The notes: a model not told the origin generated them from the letters alone. Counted from the first letter of the stretch, positions 7,424-53,060 are shown. The stretch: 64,000 nt of DNA from Octopus bimaculoides (GCF_001194135.2 NC_068984.1:118691085-118755084), one strand, 5' to 3'. Translations and numbers: made by a program.

Positions 7424-7630
7424 TTTTTTTCCATCTATTTTAATACTGTTTTATATATATCATCATCATCATCGTTTAACGTCCGCTTTCCATGCTAGCA
7501 TGGCTCAGTCAAATCGTCCAACACATGCTAGCATGGAAAGCGGACGTTAAATGATGATGATGATGATGATGATGATATATATATATATATATATATATAT
7601 ATAACAGTATTAAAATAGATGGAAAAAAAA
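7424..7630. repeat. Fold-back inverted duplication involving the 3' end of a family D SINE and its flank
   Basis: Arm 7424-7502 (ttttccatctattttaatactgtt...tttaacgtccgctttccatgctagcatg) is the reverse complement of 7524-7630. Spacer 21 nt. Confidence 0.9.
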
Positions 7631-7635
7631 GATTT

Positions 7636-7690
7636 TATTTAGTACGACACATGTTTCGACCTGTTCTGGGTCTCTTCAGGTACATAAATA
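7636..7690 (-). ncRNA. Type I hammerhead ribozyme motif, apparently intact (minimal, PLE/retrozyme type)
   Basis: Minus strand: GUAC-CUGAAGA-GACC cagaaca GGUC-GAAAC-AUGU-GUC/GUAC. All core nucleotides present, stem I and stem II pair, stem III is short with palindromic ACAUGU. Predicted cut between 7646 and 7645. Confidence 0.85.
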
Positions 7691-8894
7691 AATATAAAAA
7701 AAAAGACTCACTAGAGATTTGGCTTTATGTATCGCTAAAGGTCTGTCAACTATAGATAATAACAGGTAATCGAAACTGTGTTGGTGCTTTACTCATCATC
7801 CACATACATTTTGTATAATTTCACCATTANNNNNNNNNNNNNNNNNNNNNNNNNNNNNNNNNNNNNNNNNNNNNNNNNNNNNNNNNNNNNNNNNNNNNNN
7901 NNNNNNNNNNNNNNNNNNNNNNNNNNNNNNNNNNNNNNNNNNNNNNNNNNNNNNNNNNNNNNNNNNNNNNNNNNNNNNNNNNNNNNNNNNNNNNNNNNNN
8001 NNNNNNNNNNNNNNNNNNNNNNNNNNNNNNNNNNNNNNNNNNNNNNNNNNNNNNNNNNNNNNNNNNNNNNNNNNNNNNNNNNNNNNNNNNNNNNNNNNNN
8101 NNNNNNNNNNNNNNNNNNNNNNNNNNNNNNNNNNNNNNNNNNNNNNNNNNNNNNNNNNNNNNNNNNNNNNNNNNNNNNNNNNNNNNNNNNNNNNNNNNNN
8201 NNNNNNNNNNNNNNNNNNNNNNNNNNNNNNNNNNNNNNNNNNNNNNNNNNNNNNNNNNNNTATATATATATATATATATATATATATATATATATATATA
8301 TATATATATATCTGTGTGCATTTATATATATATATTTCTGAGTGTGTTTAAGTATATGAGTATGTACATGTGGTACTGTAAGTGTATAATAAACTAGATG
8401 TCTGTATGCGAACTGCTTCATCATATCATGGGATGTAACAAGCTATATGCCTTCACAATTATCTCCCTTACACTGCCAACTCTTAACAACTAACAGCCTT
8501 TTTCTGGTTGAATAAAACATGTCACCACTGATGAAAGGACAACATACATTGTGTTTTACACACAAGAGTTACAATGAAGGTTAGTGCATGTTGAACACCA
8601 ACTAGCCTGTATATATACTTTCACATATCTTACGGTTTCTATGGTACTGAGTACTTATTCAGACTAATGCCACTATACACACACACCATATATATATATA
8701 TATATATATATATATATATATATATATATATATATATACACATACACATATAGTAATGTCTATTCTCACATTAATACGGCTGTTCTATAGGAATCGGTGT
8801 TACTACCATTTTTAACCCCAGGAGGATCCTCCTCCAGTTGGTTATCGAAGCAATCTGCACCTGATATATATTGTAAGCAGAGAGGCTAGTTACA

Positions 8895-9088
8895 AGCTAC
8901 TAGTAGTTTCATGCACCAGAGATGTAGACTAGGCAAGTTTTAATAACACACCTTGTGTCTCCAAGCAATCTCAAGCTCTGAGCACATAGCCTATACAACT
9001 TAAGAGCTGGAAGATAGCTTGAAGACACAAGGTCTGTTACTAAAACTTGCCTAGTCTACATCTCCAATGTATGAAACTATTAGTAGCT
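8895..9088. repeat. Approx. 85-bp-arm imperfect palindrome with a 23-nt loop
   Basis: 8895-8979 is the reverse complement of 9003-9088 with scattered mismatches. Arm ends carry gaaacta(c/t)tagtagc. Confidence 0.9.
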
Positions 9089-10265
9089 CATAATTATATA
9101 GCTACTTTGGTTGTTACATATATATATATATATATGTATATAATTAATAGTTTAAAGAAAACAGTGAATACATATAGAATATTTACTTTTTAATCATTTT
9201 GCAGTCATATAAAGTTCTTTTTTGCTTACACAACATTTCAGCCATTTAAAGTGTGTTATGATGTAATAATAAACAATCGTCGGCACTCGATTTCCAGGGC
9301 GCCGCCTTCGGATGCACTTCCCCTCCGATCCGTCGTCGTGACCCGTTCCCATCGGGCCGGTAGGCACGTGGCGTCTGCAGGTCACAGGCGAGCGCCCCGG
9401 CATCTGGACCCACGTCTAGAAAAAAAAAATTTTTTTTCTAGACACTGAAGTATTAATTTATTGATTTTTAAAAAATATTTTTTTTTTATACGCGATAGAC
9501 TGTACTCACTTTTTTCTATATGCCTGTCTAAATGAAGTATTGTTTCATCCTCTGTGGTTTTGTACATCTGTATTCTATGTATAGAAAAAGCATTATGTTT
9601 CTTTATATGTGATTAAATGTTCGAGATGTGATATATTAGTTGGATGACCTTAAATTTGTTGTTTGTTCCACAACCAAAGTTTGTTATACTCGTCTCATTT
9701 ACTTGAGCACTTCTCTTGCAGTCCTATTAACCCTCTTGTTCCTAATAAGAAACAATCACTATTATTATTGATATATTATAATATACACACACACTTTTTT
9801 ATCTTTTATCGTTTATTCATTTTAGTCTTTGGACTGTGACCATGCTGGAGCACTACCTTGGTGAGTTTCTTTAAACAAATCAACCTTAGTGATTATTTTT
9901 AGACATGGTACTTTTCAATTGGTCCTTTTTTGCTGGACCACTAAGTCATGGAAATGTAAACATATCAACACTGGTTGCCAAGCATTGTTAAGAAACAAAC
10001 ACACACACACACACACATATAATGAGCTTTTTCAGCTTCCATATACCAAATCCACTTACATGGCTTTGGTTGAACCAGGGTTATAGTGAAAAACACTGGC
10101 CCATATATAAGTATATATATATATATATTCATTATGAAGATATTTCTTAAACATCTTATAGGGATAGTTTTATCCAAGATACCCTGGTTTAATATATTAT
10201 ATTTTGAAGAGATATTTCTTCAATAAATATATTATAAAACATCAAATATTGTTAANNNNNNNNNN

Positions 10266-50397: not shown

Positions 50398-50662
50398 TTA
50401 ACCTCAAAAAGGTTTCTTTGCCCAGCATTATATGAATGTCTCTCTTGGTCAGTGGATGACTCTTATGGCAAAACTGCACAACTGCCATGCTGCTTCCTCT
50501 AGCTTCATCTGCAACACTAGGCTGGTTAGCTATTGGGTGTTACACCTTACCAAATAATTCACAGCCTATGAATTATTTCCATATTCAATGTTAACCCCTA
50601 TAACCAAATGCTGTTCTTCTGTTGAGAGCTGTCTTAACAGCAATATAGGCCCTATAGTATTT

Positions 50663-51108
50663 GTTGGCACTCCGTCGGTTACGACGACGAGGTTTCCAGT
50701 TGATCCGATCAATGGAACAGCCTGCTCGTGAAATTAACGTGCAAGTGGCTGAGCACTCCACAGACATGTGTACCCTTAACGTAGTTCTCAGGGGAGATTC
50801 AGCATGACACAGAGTGTGACAAGGCTAGTCCTTTGAAATAACAGTTACAACAGAAACAGGAAGAAAGAGTGAGAGAAAGTTGTGGTGAAAGAGTACAGCA
50901 GGGTTCGCCACCACCCCCTGCCGGAGCCTCGTGGAGCATTAGGTGTTTTCGCTCAATAAACACTCACAACANNNNNNNNNNGCCGGAGCCTCGTGGAGCA
51001 TTAGGTGTTTTCGCTCAATAAACACTCACAACAACCGGTCTGGGAATTGAAACCGCGATCCTACGACCGCGAGTCCGCTGCCCTAACCACTGGGCCATTG
51101 CGCCTCCA
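50663..51108 (-). mobile_element. SINE family C, full length (contains an assembly overlap)
   Basis: 13-bp TSD ccctatagtattt at 50650-50662 and 51109-51121. Confidence 0.92.
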
Positions 51109-52147
51109 CCCTATAGTATTTATTTAGAGAACAAACCACAACATACACAGATTAGAATTGAAACCCCTTGACCATTGAGGTGCCAAGGCAATTCTTAAAA
51201 TGACTCTGCTCCTATCCACTACCTGGAAATCTACTAGGTAGGAGTTCTCTCCCCCACCCCCGTCTGCCAAAAATCTCTACTAATATTTCCTCAAGCAGAC
51301 TTCACTCAGCCCATTGTTTAAGGCATCCTATCAAAATCAAACCTGAGAGTAAAACCTTCTCTTATAATAAGATATTCTTCTAAATTCTTTTCCTGTGAGT
51401 TACAAAATGTCTTAGAGACATTCCATATGATTATAATTTAAGTTATCTCATTCAAACATTTACGCAATGCAAATCCTTGAAAATTGGCTTAAGAAGTCCT
51501 AATTCTACTACAGTATTAGGAAGAAAGCATATTATAAATTTTTGGTTTGTTTGTGTTTTTTTTTTAAATCCAAGTTTGCTGCTGCGGTTTAGTAATAAAC
51601 TCTTAGCATTGGTTAATAACAAAATGTGTTGTGAAAATAGGCTTCATTCACCAATCTTTTTTAAGAAATTACTTAGCAACATAAATTGAATTCACAAGCA
51701 TTTAAACTACCTGCATATTCTAGTTCCAGTTTGCAGTTAACTAATTCAATTTAGTATAGTATTCTCATTTTCTCAAAATATGTTGGGAACAAAAAAATGG
51801 AAATTATATAGTTAAAGGGGTGTCTATACATTACTAATTCATGAAAGAGTTTTATGACATTTTTCTAGATTCACATTTTGTCAGTCCTCCTCCTTTTCCT
51901 CACCATCTTTGTCATCATCACCATCAGCATTTAAATGTCTATATTTCTATGTTTGTATGGGTCAGATGAGAGAACACTGAGGCAGAGTTTTCTATGGCCA
52001 GATACCCCTTCCTGTATCAAACCCTACTTCTTCCTAAGTGAAGTAATGATCTTCTTGTCTATCAAATAACAAACAGTTTGGACATGTTTCTATGGAAAAC
52101 TAGAAATAAATGGCACCATATGAATGAGCCTTTTGCTTACAAAGATT

Positions 52148-52465
52148 TGTGAAATTAACGTGCAAGTGGCTGAGCACTCCACAGACACGTGTACCCTTAA
52201 TGTAGTTCTTGGGGATATTCAGTGTGACACAGCGTGACAAGGCTGACCCTTTGAATTACAGGCACAACAGAAACAGGAAATAAGAGTGAGAGAAAGTTGT
52301 GGTGGAAGAGTACAGCAGGGTTCGCCACCATCCCTTGCCAGAGCCTCGTGGAGCTTTTAGGTGTTTTCGCTCAATAAACACTCACAACACCCGGTCTGGG
52401 AATCGAAACTGCGATCCTATGACCGCGAGTCCACTGCCCTAACCACTGGGCCATTGCGCCTCCAC
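52148..52465 (-). mobile_element. SINE family C lacking its 3' end
   Basis: Matches 28251-28643 from head to gtgaaattaacgtgcaagtggc. Confidence 0.9.
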
Positions 52466-52840
52466 TGTAATGAAAATAAATTCACATGAAAGGATTCTTA
52501 AAGACCTTTAACTGAATAAGTATCAGGATAAATACTGCTCTGTAAAATTTCACACAATTACTGAGCATTTACAGAAATTTGATAAAATCTCTAATATTGC
52601 TCTAAAATTAAATAAAACAACCCATGTTAAAAGAATGAAGAACTTTTAGCATGCCAGGCAAAATGCTTAGCGGCATTTCATCCATCTTTCCATTCTGTGT
52701 TCAAATTCCACTGAGGTCAACTTTGCCTTTCATCCTTTTGGGGGTCGATAAAATAGGTATCAGCTGGTGTAAGTGACTTACACCCTCTCCTGAAATTGCT
52801 GGCCTTGTGCCAAAATTTGAAACTATTATCATTAGTCAAC

Positions 52841-53060
52841 TAGTTAACCATTCAACTATTTAATTAATCGACTGTTTGATTAATCATTCAGTCAATCAAT
52901 CAATCATCTAAGTTCATCAAAGTCCTTTCATTGCCTTTCGCAATCTCATCAGTAACATGCCATCTTATCACCTGGTCTGATAAGCTTAGCTGATTGGTCG
53001 ACTGATTGACTGAATAATTAATCAAGCAATCACTGAGTTAATTAGTTGAATGGGTAACTA
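52841..53060. repeat. Approx. 75-bp-arm palindrome with a hammerhead-like motif in the loop, flanked by inverted family B SINEs
   Basis: 52841-52914 pairs with 52982-53060. SINE B on + at approx. 52640-52830 and on - at approx. 53075-53300. Confidence 0.88.
52915..52957 (-). ncRNA. Hammerhead-like motif, near intact
   Basis: Minus strand: UGUUA-CUGAUGA-G AUUGC gaaag GCAAU-GAAAG-GA-CUU/UGAUG. G10.1 lacks its C partner, and stem I is 5 bp with G-U wobbles. Confidence 0.55.

Follow-up and report, generated by a model that had tools for sequence, protein, structure and literature searches.

Hammerhead motifs and some fold-back palindromes in an Octopus bimaculoides sequence as probable relics of Penelope-like element insertions

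Introduction

Penelope-like elements (PLEs) and small hammerhead-bearing retroelements are the closest described counterparts of the hammerhead ribozyme motifs and fold-back palindromes analyzed here, which lie between 7.4 and 53.1 kb of a 64,000-nucleotide (nt) stretch of Octopus bimaculoides DNA (GCF_001194135.2 NC_068984.1:118691085-118755084; the whole stretch is hereafter the window). Dimeric variants of PLE hammerheads were reportedly described by Lunse, Weinberg, and Breaker in 2017. Metazoan retrozymes, which are non-long terminal repeat (non-LTR) elements, are said to have been described by Cervera and de la Pena in 2020, and Ferbeyre et al. reportedly found in 1998 that the Schistosoma short interspersed nuclear element (SINE) of the Sm-alpha type carries a hammerhead. 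PLE hammerheads are of a minimal form whose helix III is palindromic and whose helix II is large and bulged; they act weakly and only as dimers (Cervera and de la Pena, 2014, PMC4209133). PLE insertions show heavy 5' truncation, often an adjacent inverted 5'-truncated copy, optional tails of 30-40 bp, and a bias toward microsatellites (Craig et al., 2021, PMC8557442), and a purified PLE protein has been found to cut both strands of the target and to extend them (Frangieh et al., 2024, PMC11167929).

An initial annotation, generated from the nucleotide sequence, proposed that the octopus motifs and palindromes constitute a PLE-driven ribozyme-foldback system. Our follow-up analysis bears out the observation and the interpretation only in part and leads mostly to known biology, in that some of the hairpins are best explained as a known by-product of PLE insertion. 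We consider it probable that several of these loci are dead 3'-end relics of hammerhead-bearing PLEs, or of short non-autonomous elements using PLE machinery, and that the fold-back is an integration scar and not a partner of the ribozyme. If this is true, the cephalopod examples join the known link between PLEs and minimal hammerheads, including a variant with a long helix II and a GUA site that is missed by Rfam, and known PLE integration behavior suffices to account for hairpin insertions with ribozyme sequence, no special system being needed.

Materials and Methods

Fold-backs were inventoried over the whole window, the arm length being set to 40 nt or more and the spacer to 250 nt or less, and microsatellite pairs were set aside. 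Rfam was searched with its curated thresholds and, in addition, at a lax E<=10 over the whole window and over sub-regions at 33, 52.9, 23.8-24.7, and 49.5 kb. A strict hammerhead descriptor specified a helix I of at least 4 bp, CUGANGA, a helix II of at least 4 bp, GAAA, the pair A15.1-U16.1 with one further pair, and H17. The PLE-type minimal-hammerhead descriptor, which called for a 5' bulge in a helix II of at least 6 bp, has a chance expectation of 0.013 per 64 kb. An 86-kb stretch of O. bimaculoides chromosome CM046602.1 (L004) was used as a comparison locus.

The window is low in GC, rich in microsatellites, and of draft quality, with 14 runs of N, none of which interrupts a feature under discussion according to the gap list; the nearest gap is more than 600 nt from both the 9-kb and the 52.9-kb fold-backs. 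Because the 45-kb span that holds the loci crosses many gaps, neither the distances between loci nor a single shared intron is established. The long N runs (at 7830, 12282, 13177, 29741, 31108, and 33405) mostly have (TA)n or (TG)n microsatellite borders. Two long runs lie within 100-150 nt of hammerhead loci, so that tandem or complex PLE-type structures could hide there.

Results and Discussion

The window holds four non-microsatellite fold-backs, at 7424-7629, 8887-9096, 32993-33307, and 52831-53070. They are the palindromes of the initial annotation, located where it had placed them, and the sole four found with our arm and spacer limits. The strict descriptor gave two matches, 7642-7683(-) and 33029-33082(-), versus a mean of 0.0125 in 400 dinucleotide-preserving shuffles. 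The PLE-type descriptor matched the 33-kb motif in the window and one motif in L004, versus the 0.013 expected. No hammerhead besides 7642-7683 was returned by Rfam at E<=10, either from the whole window or from the four sub-regions. Core-only matches in the window numbered five versus 0.70 expected; when the three genuine ones are subtracted, the remaining two (24566 and 48429) are at chance level.

The 33-kb locus (32993-33307) is a head-to-head inverted pair of 5'-truncated copies of about 137 nt, with the 3' ends outward. Its arms (32993-33129 and 33173-33307) are 87.7% identical over 138 nt by BLAST within the window, (GT)n lies on the left flank, and the palindrome ends 98 nt from the gap at 33405-34222. 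The minus arm contains a hammerhead-like motif that is intact by descriptor (33029-33082(-); GUGU/CUGAUGA/AUAUGUU-U-GAG UAUUU CUC AACAUAU/GAAA/CUA-U-UAG/UA, cut before GCAC), with a helix I of 4 bp, a helix II of 7+3 bp with one bulge, a palindromic helix III (ACUA-U-UAGU), the conserved hammerhead core, a GUA site, and a predicted cleavage at 33033/33032. A full motif had been annotated in each arm; the minus-arm copy is indeed complete, whereas the twin in the plus arm (33217-33271(+)) is decayed, with both core boxes kept, helices I and II broken, and C15.2 changed to U. From the cleavage site to the outer arm end there are 40 nt in the minus arm and 39-40 nt in the plus arm. Divergence between the arms is about 13% within the hammerhead versus 12% overall, and thus there is no sign of selection. 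Furthermore, the hairpin RNA has a predicted stability of -160.6 kcal/mol versus -92.7 kcal/mol with the hammerhead fold enforced. According to this folding model, the antisense arm would sequester the ribozyme within one transcript, and the hairpin is no aid to it.

A similar arrangement was found at 9 kb (8887-9096), where a head-to-head inverted pair flanked by (TA)n keeps only a 3' half-module. The arms (8887-8979 and 9003-9096) have their 3' ends outward and are 85% identical over 94 nt by BLAST within the window; they contain no CUGANGA box, the catalytic half being absent. The identities of 85-88% at 9 and 33 kb argue that both pairs are old and real duplications, not assembly artifacts. 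What the two loci have in common is a 17-mer, ATGAAACTAYTAGTAGC, that occurs four times in the window, once per arm of the 9- and 33-kb palindromes and nowhere else (chance expectation, 0.47; 0 of 100 shuffles gave four occurrences). It is oriented with the module outward in both pairs, and it stops short of the arm ends by 9 nt at 9 kb and by 38 nt at 33 kb. At 9 kb, it is located at 8896-8912(-) as AUGAAACUACUAGUAGC, composed of GAAA, a palindromic helix-III-like segment, and GUA and including the perfect 12-nt palindrome GCUACUAGUAGC, and the 17-mer recurs in the other arm at 9071-9087(+) as AUGAAACUAUUAGUAGC. The annotated GAAAC-UAxUA-GUA module is present in each arm and is not accompanied by a catalytic box. 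Common sequence between the 9- and 33-kb elements is limited to 17-24 nt of this 3' half-module.

In L004 the 17-mer is found once, at 45228, where it belongs to a solo element (about 45160-45265) that is not palindromic and is a relative of the 9-kb family. The 50 nt upstream of this copy resembles the 9-kb arms (score of 29.5 versus 15.7 +/- 3.1; p about 0.001), and TATCATATGAATATACCTG (CAUAUGA) is in register with TATCTGATGAATATGTCTG (CUGAUGA) of the 33-kb family. This register suggests that the 9- and 33-kb families are linked and that the catalytic box has decayed in the 9-kb lineage, and the solo copy implies that the palindrome is optional. For the 9-kb minus arm, a Helitron 3' end (hairpin plus CTAG) was considered and rejected, since the other three copies are without CTAG and the flanking T.

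Coding PLE sequence and a hammerhead come together in L004 at 63207-64551, a head-to-head inverted pair with the 3' ends outward. Its arms encode a PLE GIY-YIG domain (VYSIPLSCGRLYKGKT...EHRK...), followed by a transfer RNA (tRNA)-like module, (AAT)n, and then a tail. In the longer tail, a motif with a palindromic ACGU helix III passes the PLE-type descriptor and is readable with an extra A. The arms stop at different 3' points, about 97 nt apart. This pair directly exemplifies, in Octopus, a PLE joined with a minimal hammerhead and a head-to-head fold-back. Its tail has a relative in the window at 49306-49568(+) (78.5-89.6% identity), a copy of the 3' region of an Octopus PLE, either 5' truncated or non-autonomous, with a tRNA-like head, (AAT)n, and a tail that bears a decayed minimal hammerhead; in its core, 49478-49509(+), position 17 is a G and 15.2/16.2 are mismatched. 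Homology to the L004 pair, with its endonuclease sequence, suggests a PLE coding context for the 49.5-kb family. The motif annotated at 49.5 kb is thus a decayed homologue of an O. bimaculoides PLE-tail hammerhead. It lies on the plus strand and, with G17, breaks the conserved core. A type III or permuted topology was discarded for the PLE-tail motif, there being no helix I hairpin upstream.

The tRNA-like module (49300-49400(+) in the window; 63370-63440 and 64385-64470 in L004) has A-box-like and B-box-like sequences and stands upstream of (AAT)n and the PLE tail. It was called neither by Aragorn, with which the window copy was scanned, nor by Rfam at its thresholds. It could be part of a PLE 3' untranslated region (UTR) or a tRNA-SINE mobilized by a PLE; in L004 it lies directly downstream of the PLE endonuclease open reading frame (ORF), which is why it may be 3' UTR and not an independent SINE. 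We also observed a 19-nt inverted copy of the extreme 3' end of the 49.5-kb element at 49145-49163 (94.7% identity, E=0.012), about 140 nt upstream of the 5' end of the element and about 400 nt from the copied 3' end, with its own 3' end outward. It may be a very short head-to-head partner of the element.

The sole hammerhead above the Rfam threshold in the window, 7642-7683(-), is a type I ribozyme (RF00163; 37.1 bits versus a gathering score of 34, E=1e-5) that also passes the strict descriptor. It reads GUAC/CUGAAGA/GACC-CAGAACA-GGUC/GAAA/C-AUGU-G-U-C, cut before GUAC, has the conserved core (C3-A9, G12-A14, A15.1-U16.1, and H17), and has a predicted cleavage at 7646/7645. Helix III/loop 3 is short and palindromic (ACAUGUGU), and a self-dimer is predicted to be favored (-20.8 versus 2 x -6.1 kcal/mol). 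The G10.1-C11.1 pair is present, and the extra nucleotide after A9 that marks PLE minimal hammerheads is absent. An AU-rich stretch of 39 nt (7603-7641(-)) from the ribozyme to an (AT)n microsatellite is presumably the 3' tail of the hammerhead-bearing element. On the 5' side, the sequence at 7684-7829(-), without a second copy by BLAST against the window, enters the gap at 7830-8260, which begins 147 nt from the hammerhead; the element continues into this gap and extends at least to 7829.

When compared with PLE minimal hammerheads, the octopus motifs are likewise of type I, with a short or absent palindromic helix III that implies dimers and a position near the 3' end of the element, and they are found as many diverged or decayed copies across a metazoan genome. 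Short palindromic helices III, which the initial annotation gave as a trait of PLE hammerheads, are present at 7642, at 33 kb, and in the L004 tail, and a large bulged helix II occurs in the 33-kb and L004 tail motifs. Unlike PLE minimal hammerheads, the 33-kb variant has A10.1-U11.1 and not G-C, has no extra nucleotide after A9, combines a 10-bp helix II with a GUA site, and is missed by Rfam. Besides, none of the 7.6-, 9-, and 33-kb copies lies in a recognizable pseudo-LTR (pLTR) beside a PLE ORF. As insertions, the 33-kb, 9-kb, and L004 63.2-64.6 kb pairs resemble those of PLEs in being head to head and 5' truncated with the 3' ends outward, in the unequal 3' ends of the L004 arms, and in their microsatellite flanks, (GT)n in the 33-kb case and (TA)n in the 9-kb case; the 7.6-kb locus and the solo L004 copy have flanks of (AT)n and a SINE tail of (GAT)n. 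The pairs differ from PLE insertions in that the copies in the window are only very short 3' fragments of about 95-140 nt, lacking both an ORF and a direct pLTR, and in that the offset between the L004 3' ends is about 97 nt and not 30-40 nt.

Like metazoan retrozymes, these are small non-coding elements with type I hammerheads, a group regarded as non-autonomous PLE derivatives. Retrozymes, however, consist of hammerhead-bearing units of 150-400 nt in direct tandem repetition and yield circular RNA, whereas the window copies are solo or inverted; indeed, a BLAST search of each hammerhead unit against the window for direct pseudo-LTRs or sense tandem partners returned inverted partners only. 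The 49.3-49.6 kb element is similar to the Schistosoma Sm-alpha SINE in joining a tRNA-like head to a tail with hammerhead core boxes, but this copy is catalytically decayed and its module in L004 directly follows PLE endonuclease sequence.

On the reading that we favor, four relics can be outlined. The first would extend from about 7603 to at least 7829(-) and carry the canonical minimal type I hammerhead; the second (32993-33307) would consist of head-to-head truncated copies, each with a long-helix-II hammerhead cut about 40 nt from the 3' end; the third (8887-9096) would be a like pair, contributed by a diverged relative in which the catalytic 5' half is gone; and the fourth (49306-49568(+)) would be a decayed PLE tail whose O. 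bimaculoides relative keeps the motif. By analogy with published PLE biochemistry, the PLE endonuclease and reverse transcriptase would cut and extend both target strands, often within a microsatellite. The two complementary DNAs would then grow toward each other and both stop short, leaving two 5'-truncated copies with their 3' ends outward; alternatively, snap-back second-strand synthesis would produce the same head-to-head picture. If the data published for this class apply, the short palindromic helix III would permit cutting only as dimers, in transcripts with two sense copies. The relics have no sense partner in the window, and in a read-through transcript the antisense arm would pair with the ribozyme, which again suggests an integration scar and not a working partner. 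The annotated proposal that hammerhead elements were copied by PLE reverse transcriptase, leaving hairpin insertions, fits the PLE-type layout at 33 and 9 kb but not the fold-backs at 7.5 and 52.9 kb, which are made of SINE sequence.

Several results weigh against such an origin. No PLE coding sequence adjoins the 7.6-, 9-, or 33-kb loci, and these loci bear no resemblance to the sequence on the 3' side of the PLE remnant of the window (described below), so that their PLE origin rests on architecture and motif type. No target-site duplications are visible at these insertions. Beyond the 17-24-nt module, the 9- and 33-kb elements show no significant similarity, and the solo L004 copy matches the 33-kb side at only 15/19 nt (p about 0.1). 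The 33-kb motifs had no Rfam match even at E<=10 in a 401-nt scan. Exact-pattern scans for the 33-kb and 7642 hammerhead types gave 0 matches in metagenome and viral collections, which are essentially non-cephalopod. Finally, when the 17-mer pairs with itself, the register of highest stability is the plain palindrome (G)CUACUAGUAG(C) and not the catalytic helix III register, which implies that the conservation of the 17-mer may reflect a recognition site and not catalysis.

The last of the points against a PLE origin is shared with the alternative that survives best, although we judge it rather unlikely: the 9- and 33-kb fold-backs might be derivatives of DNA transposons resembling miniature inverted-repeat transposable elements (MITEs), with the 17-mer and its palindrome GCTACTAGTAGC as a subterminal transposase-binding site and the hammerhead look of the 33-kb motif coincidental. 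The size of 210-315 bp, AT richness, short spacers, and TA-rich flanks are all in keeping with MITEs, as are the plain-palindrome register, the blindness of Rfam to the 33-kb hammerhead, and the 9-kb arms without a catalytic box. Coincidence is nevertheless difficult to reconcile with a strict descriptor match that is expected only 0.0125 times per window; the 33-kb motif lies 38 nt inside the arm ends and is not terminal, and a target-site duplication is visible at neither locus. In addition, the solo one-armed copy in L004 fits a 5'-truncated retro-copy better than a MITE, and a coding PLE in L004 shows the same head-to-head layout.

It is also conceivable, though in our view unlikely, that all of the fold-backs are inverted duplications at the DNA level, formed by snap-back repair or template switching during replication with no PLE mechanism. 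The 7.5-kb fold-back (7424-7629; loop, 7503-7523) is clearly of this kind. Its inner arms are a SINE-like 3' end with a (GAT)n tail, further copies of which are at 11956, 46976, and 54644, and its outer arms consist of (ATC)n, (AT)n, and a unique stretch of 27 nt: the last 27 nt of the presumed hammerhead-element tail (7603-7629) recur inverted at 7424-7450 with 100% identity. In both copies of this 27-mer the 3' end faces inward, whereas a PLE twin insertion would have it outward, so that the outward inverted pair seen at 9 and 33 kb is absent here. A copy of the 12-nt palindrome CATGCTAGCATG stands at either edge of the loop. The hammerhead itself, the annotated intact motif of Rfam grade, lies outside the hairpin, 11-12 nt from the outer arm edge. 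This fold-back is a local inverted duplication of a three-sequence junction, and its association with the hammerhead is incidental. The same explanation does not extend well to the other pairs: at 33 kb, 9 kb, and L004, the element 3' ends are at the outer ends of both arms with unduplicated flanks, a layout for which random duplication gives no reason, and the L004 arms stop at different 3' points.

The SINE-like repeat in this fold-back (7459-7567, with further copies at 11956-12200, 46976-47140, and 54644-54800) ends in ...CCATGCTAGCATGGAAAGCGGACGTTAAAC(GAT)n and holds the perfect 12-nt palindrome noted at the loop; at 7.5 kb, two 5'-truncated copies of it stand head to head. SINE families of the window are 83-97% identical to their L004 copies. 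At 7574-7641 in the window and at 45245-45285 in L004, the 3' end of a hammerhead-family element adjoins a (GAT)n/(ATC)n tail of that SINE-like repeat family, which fits PLE-type insertion into microsatellite tails.

That the 7.5-kb fold-back could be an assembly artifact of a short-read draft seems quite unlikely to us. The 98-100% identity of the unique arm parts would agree with an artifact, as would the many draft gaps, one of them 147 nt from the hammerhead and about 200 nt from the fold-back. Microsatellite lengths, in contrast, are unequal between the arms, (AT)3 versus (AT)14 and (ATC)5 versus (ATC)8, which fits a real locus that has mutated since.

A functional system in host introns, with hammerhead and hairpin cooperating in RNA processing, circular RNAs, or double-stranded RNA (dsRNA), is very hard to credit even though hammerhead sequence lies non-randomly near three of the four fold-backs, the intact motifs share the minus strand with one conserved host exon, and long hairpin RNAs are plausible dsRNA sources, for the predicted stability of the hairpin exceeds that of the ribozyme fold by about 68 kcal/mol and the ribozyme would be sequestered, the arms decay neutrally with the hammerhead included, the 9-kb family lost its catalytic half, the solo L004 copy has no palindrome, two fold-backs (7.5 and 52.9 kb) are SINE-made, a sense dimer partner is absent throughout the window, and vertebrate retrozymes are reported to be excluded from introns and exons (Li, Clavereau, and Pollet, 2026, preprint 10.64898/2026.07.22.740005). 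The initial annotation had proposed such a system as a candidate; we found no evidence that one functions here. Its statement that the best motifs are on the minus strand is correct for 7642 and 33029 but not for the 49.5-kb motif.

More speculatively, and as a suggestion to which we give little credence, the 17-24-nt module (GAAAC, a palindromic segment, and GUA followed by the cut and GC) which persists where the catalytic half is lost, may be retained not for catalysis but as a cis-acting handle that is recognized by a dimeric PLE reverse transcriptase/endonuclease to prime reverse transcription, in which case hammerhead halves would mark PLE-dependent non-autonomous elements in cephalopods. 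Were this true, the marked elements would include a tRNA-headed SINE, and their head-to-head insertions would give rise to long hairpin RNAs within introns, in a lineage with heavy RNA editing.

Other Features of the Window

The fourth fold-back, 52831-53070 (loop, 52907-52994), corresponds to the inner part, made of tail repeats, of two SINE arrays in divergent orientation (52640-53408). A hammerhead had been annotated as filling its loop. The motif in question (52915-52975(-); CUGAUGA-G-AUUGC..GCAAU-GAAA) leaves a G unpaired after A9, forms a helix III of 2 bp closed by a 2-nt loop, fails the descriptor, and has no Rfam match at E<=10; it breaks hammerhead rules in a SINE-derived fold-back, and the link is illusory. 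The four palindromes had all been taken to be other than SINE pairs and to be tied to hammerheads. Neither generalization survives: those at 7.5 and 52.9 kb are built from SINE sequence, the 7.5-kb hammerhead is outside the hairpin, the 52.9-kb loop motif is no hammerhead, and the 9-kb arms are without the catalytic half.

Two further annotated motifs were rejected as being at chance level and not meeting the core rules. The one at 24.55 kb (24566-24592(-)), a core-only match with no Rfam match and a failed descriptor, has neither the A15.1-U16.1 pair nor helix I, and the supposedly decayed one at 23.86 kb has UAAA instead of GAAA and no helix I. Look-alikes of the CUGANGA...GAAA type are common at chance level, and octopus fold-backs are often SINE pairs; both call for caution in genome scans of octopus DNA.

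The Penelope-like element annotated at 4.0-5.1 kb is present at 4055-5082(-) but broken. By Pfam and protein similarity, it is a 5'-truncated PLE remnant with a reverse transcriptase thumb and GIY-YIG domain, interrupted by frameshifts and stops (Pfam GIY-YIG, 23.4 bits versus a cutoff of 22.6; 38% identity to reverse transcriptase/GIY-YIG proteins), and no other PLE coding sequence is present in the window. When the GIY-YIG ORF was used in a second protein search, no match was returned. Two related PLE contigs from ENA metagenomes (L001 and L002) had no hammerhead by Rfam and no core motif by scan. The 3' flank of the remnant contains no hammerhead and has no similarity to the hammerhead loci; a sequence link to a PLE tail exists for the 49.5-kb motif, through L004. 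The 7642 hammerhead was also considered as part of an upstream pLTR of the remnant and rejected, PLE coding sequence being absent between the two.

In the cadherin locus of L004 (10001-10813), the N-terminal part (about 214 residues) of the cadherin-23 model XP_052821842.1 (P0004/P0011) aligns to PLE reverse transcriptase and is 60% identical to the window remnant. This model is probably a chimera of a transposable element and a gene.

The sole conserved minus-strand exon that we found, 54049-54537(-), encodes 162 aa rich in lysine and serine with 68% identity to P0005, an unnamed protein from sequencing-run assemblies for which no Pfam domain is recorded. A 16-kb contig of a distant relative with the orthologous exon (L003) is conserved at the exon only and contains no hammerhead. 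ORF fragments at 22352-22831(-) and 34969-35274(-) share similar C2H2 zinc-finger-like motifs (C..CGK.C.S.GGLK.H) that are below Pfam cutoffs, and they look repeat-borne. Lastly, a tRNA above the Rfam gathering score (37.4 bits) is located at 49511-49583(-) of L004, in the O. bimaculoides cadherin locus.

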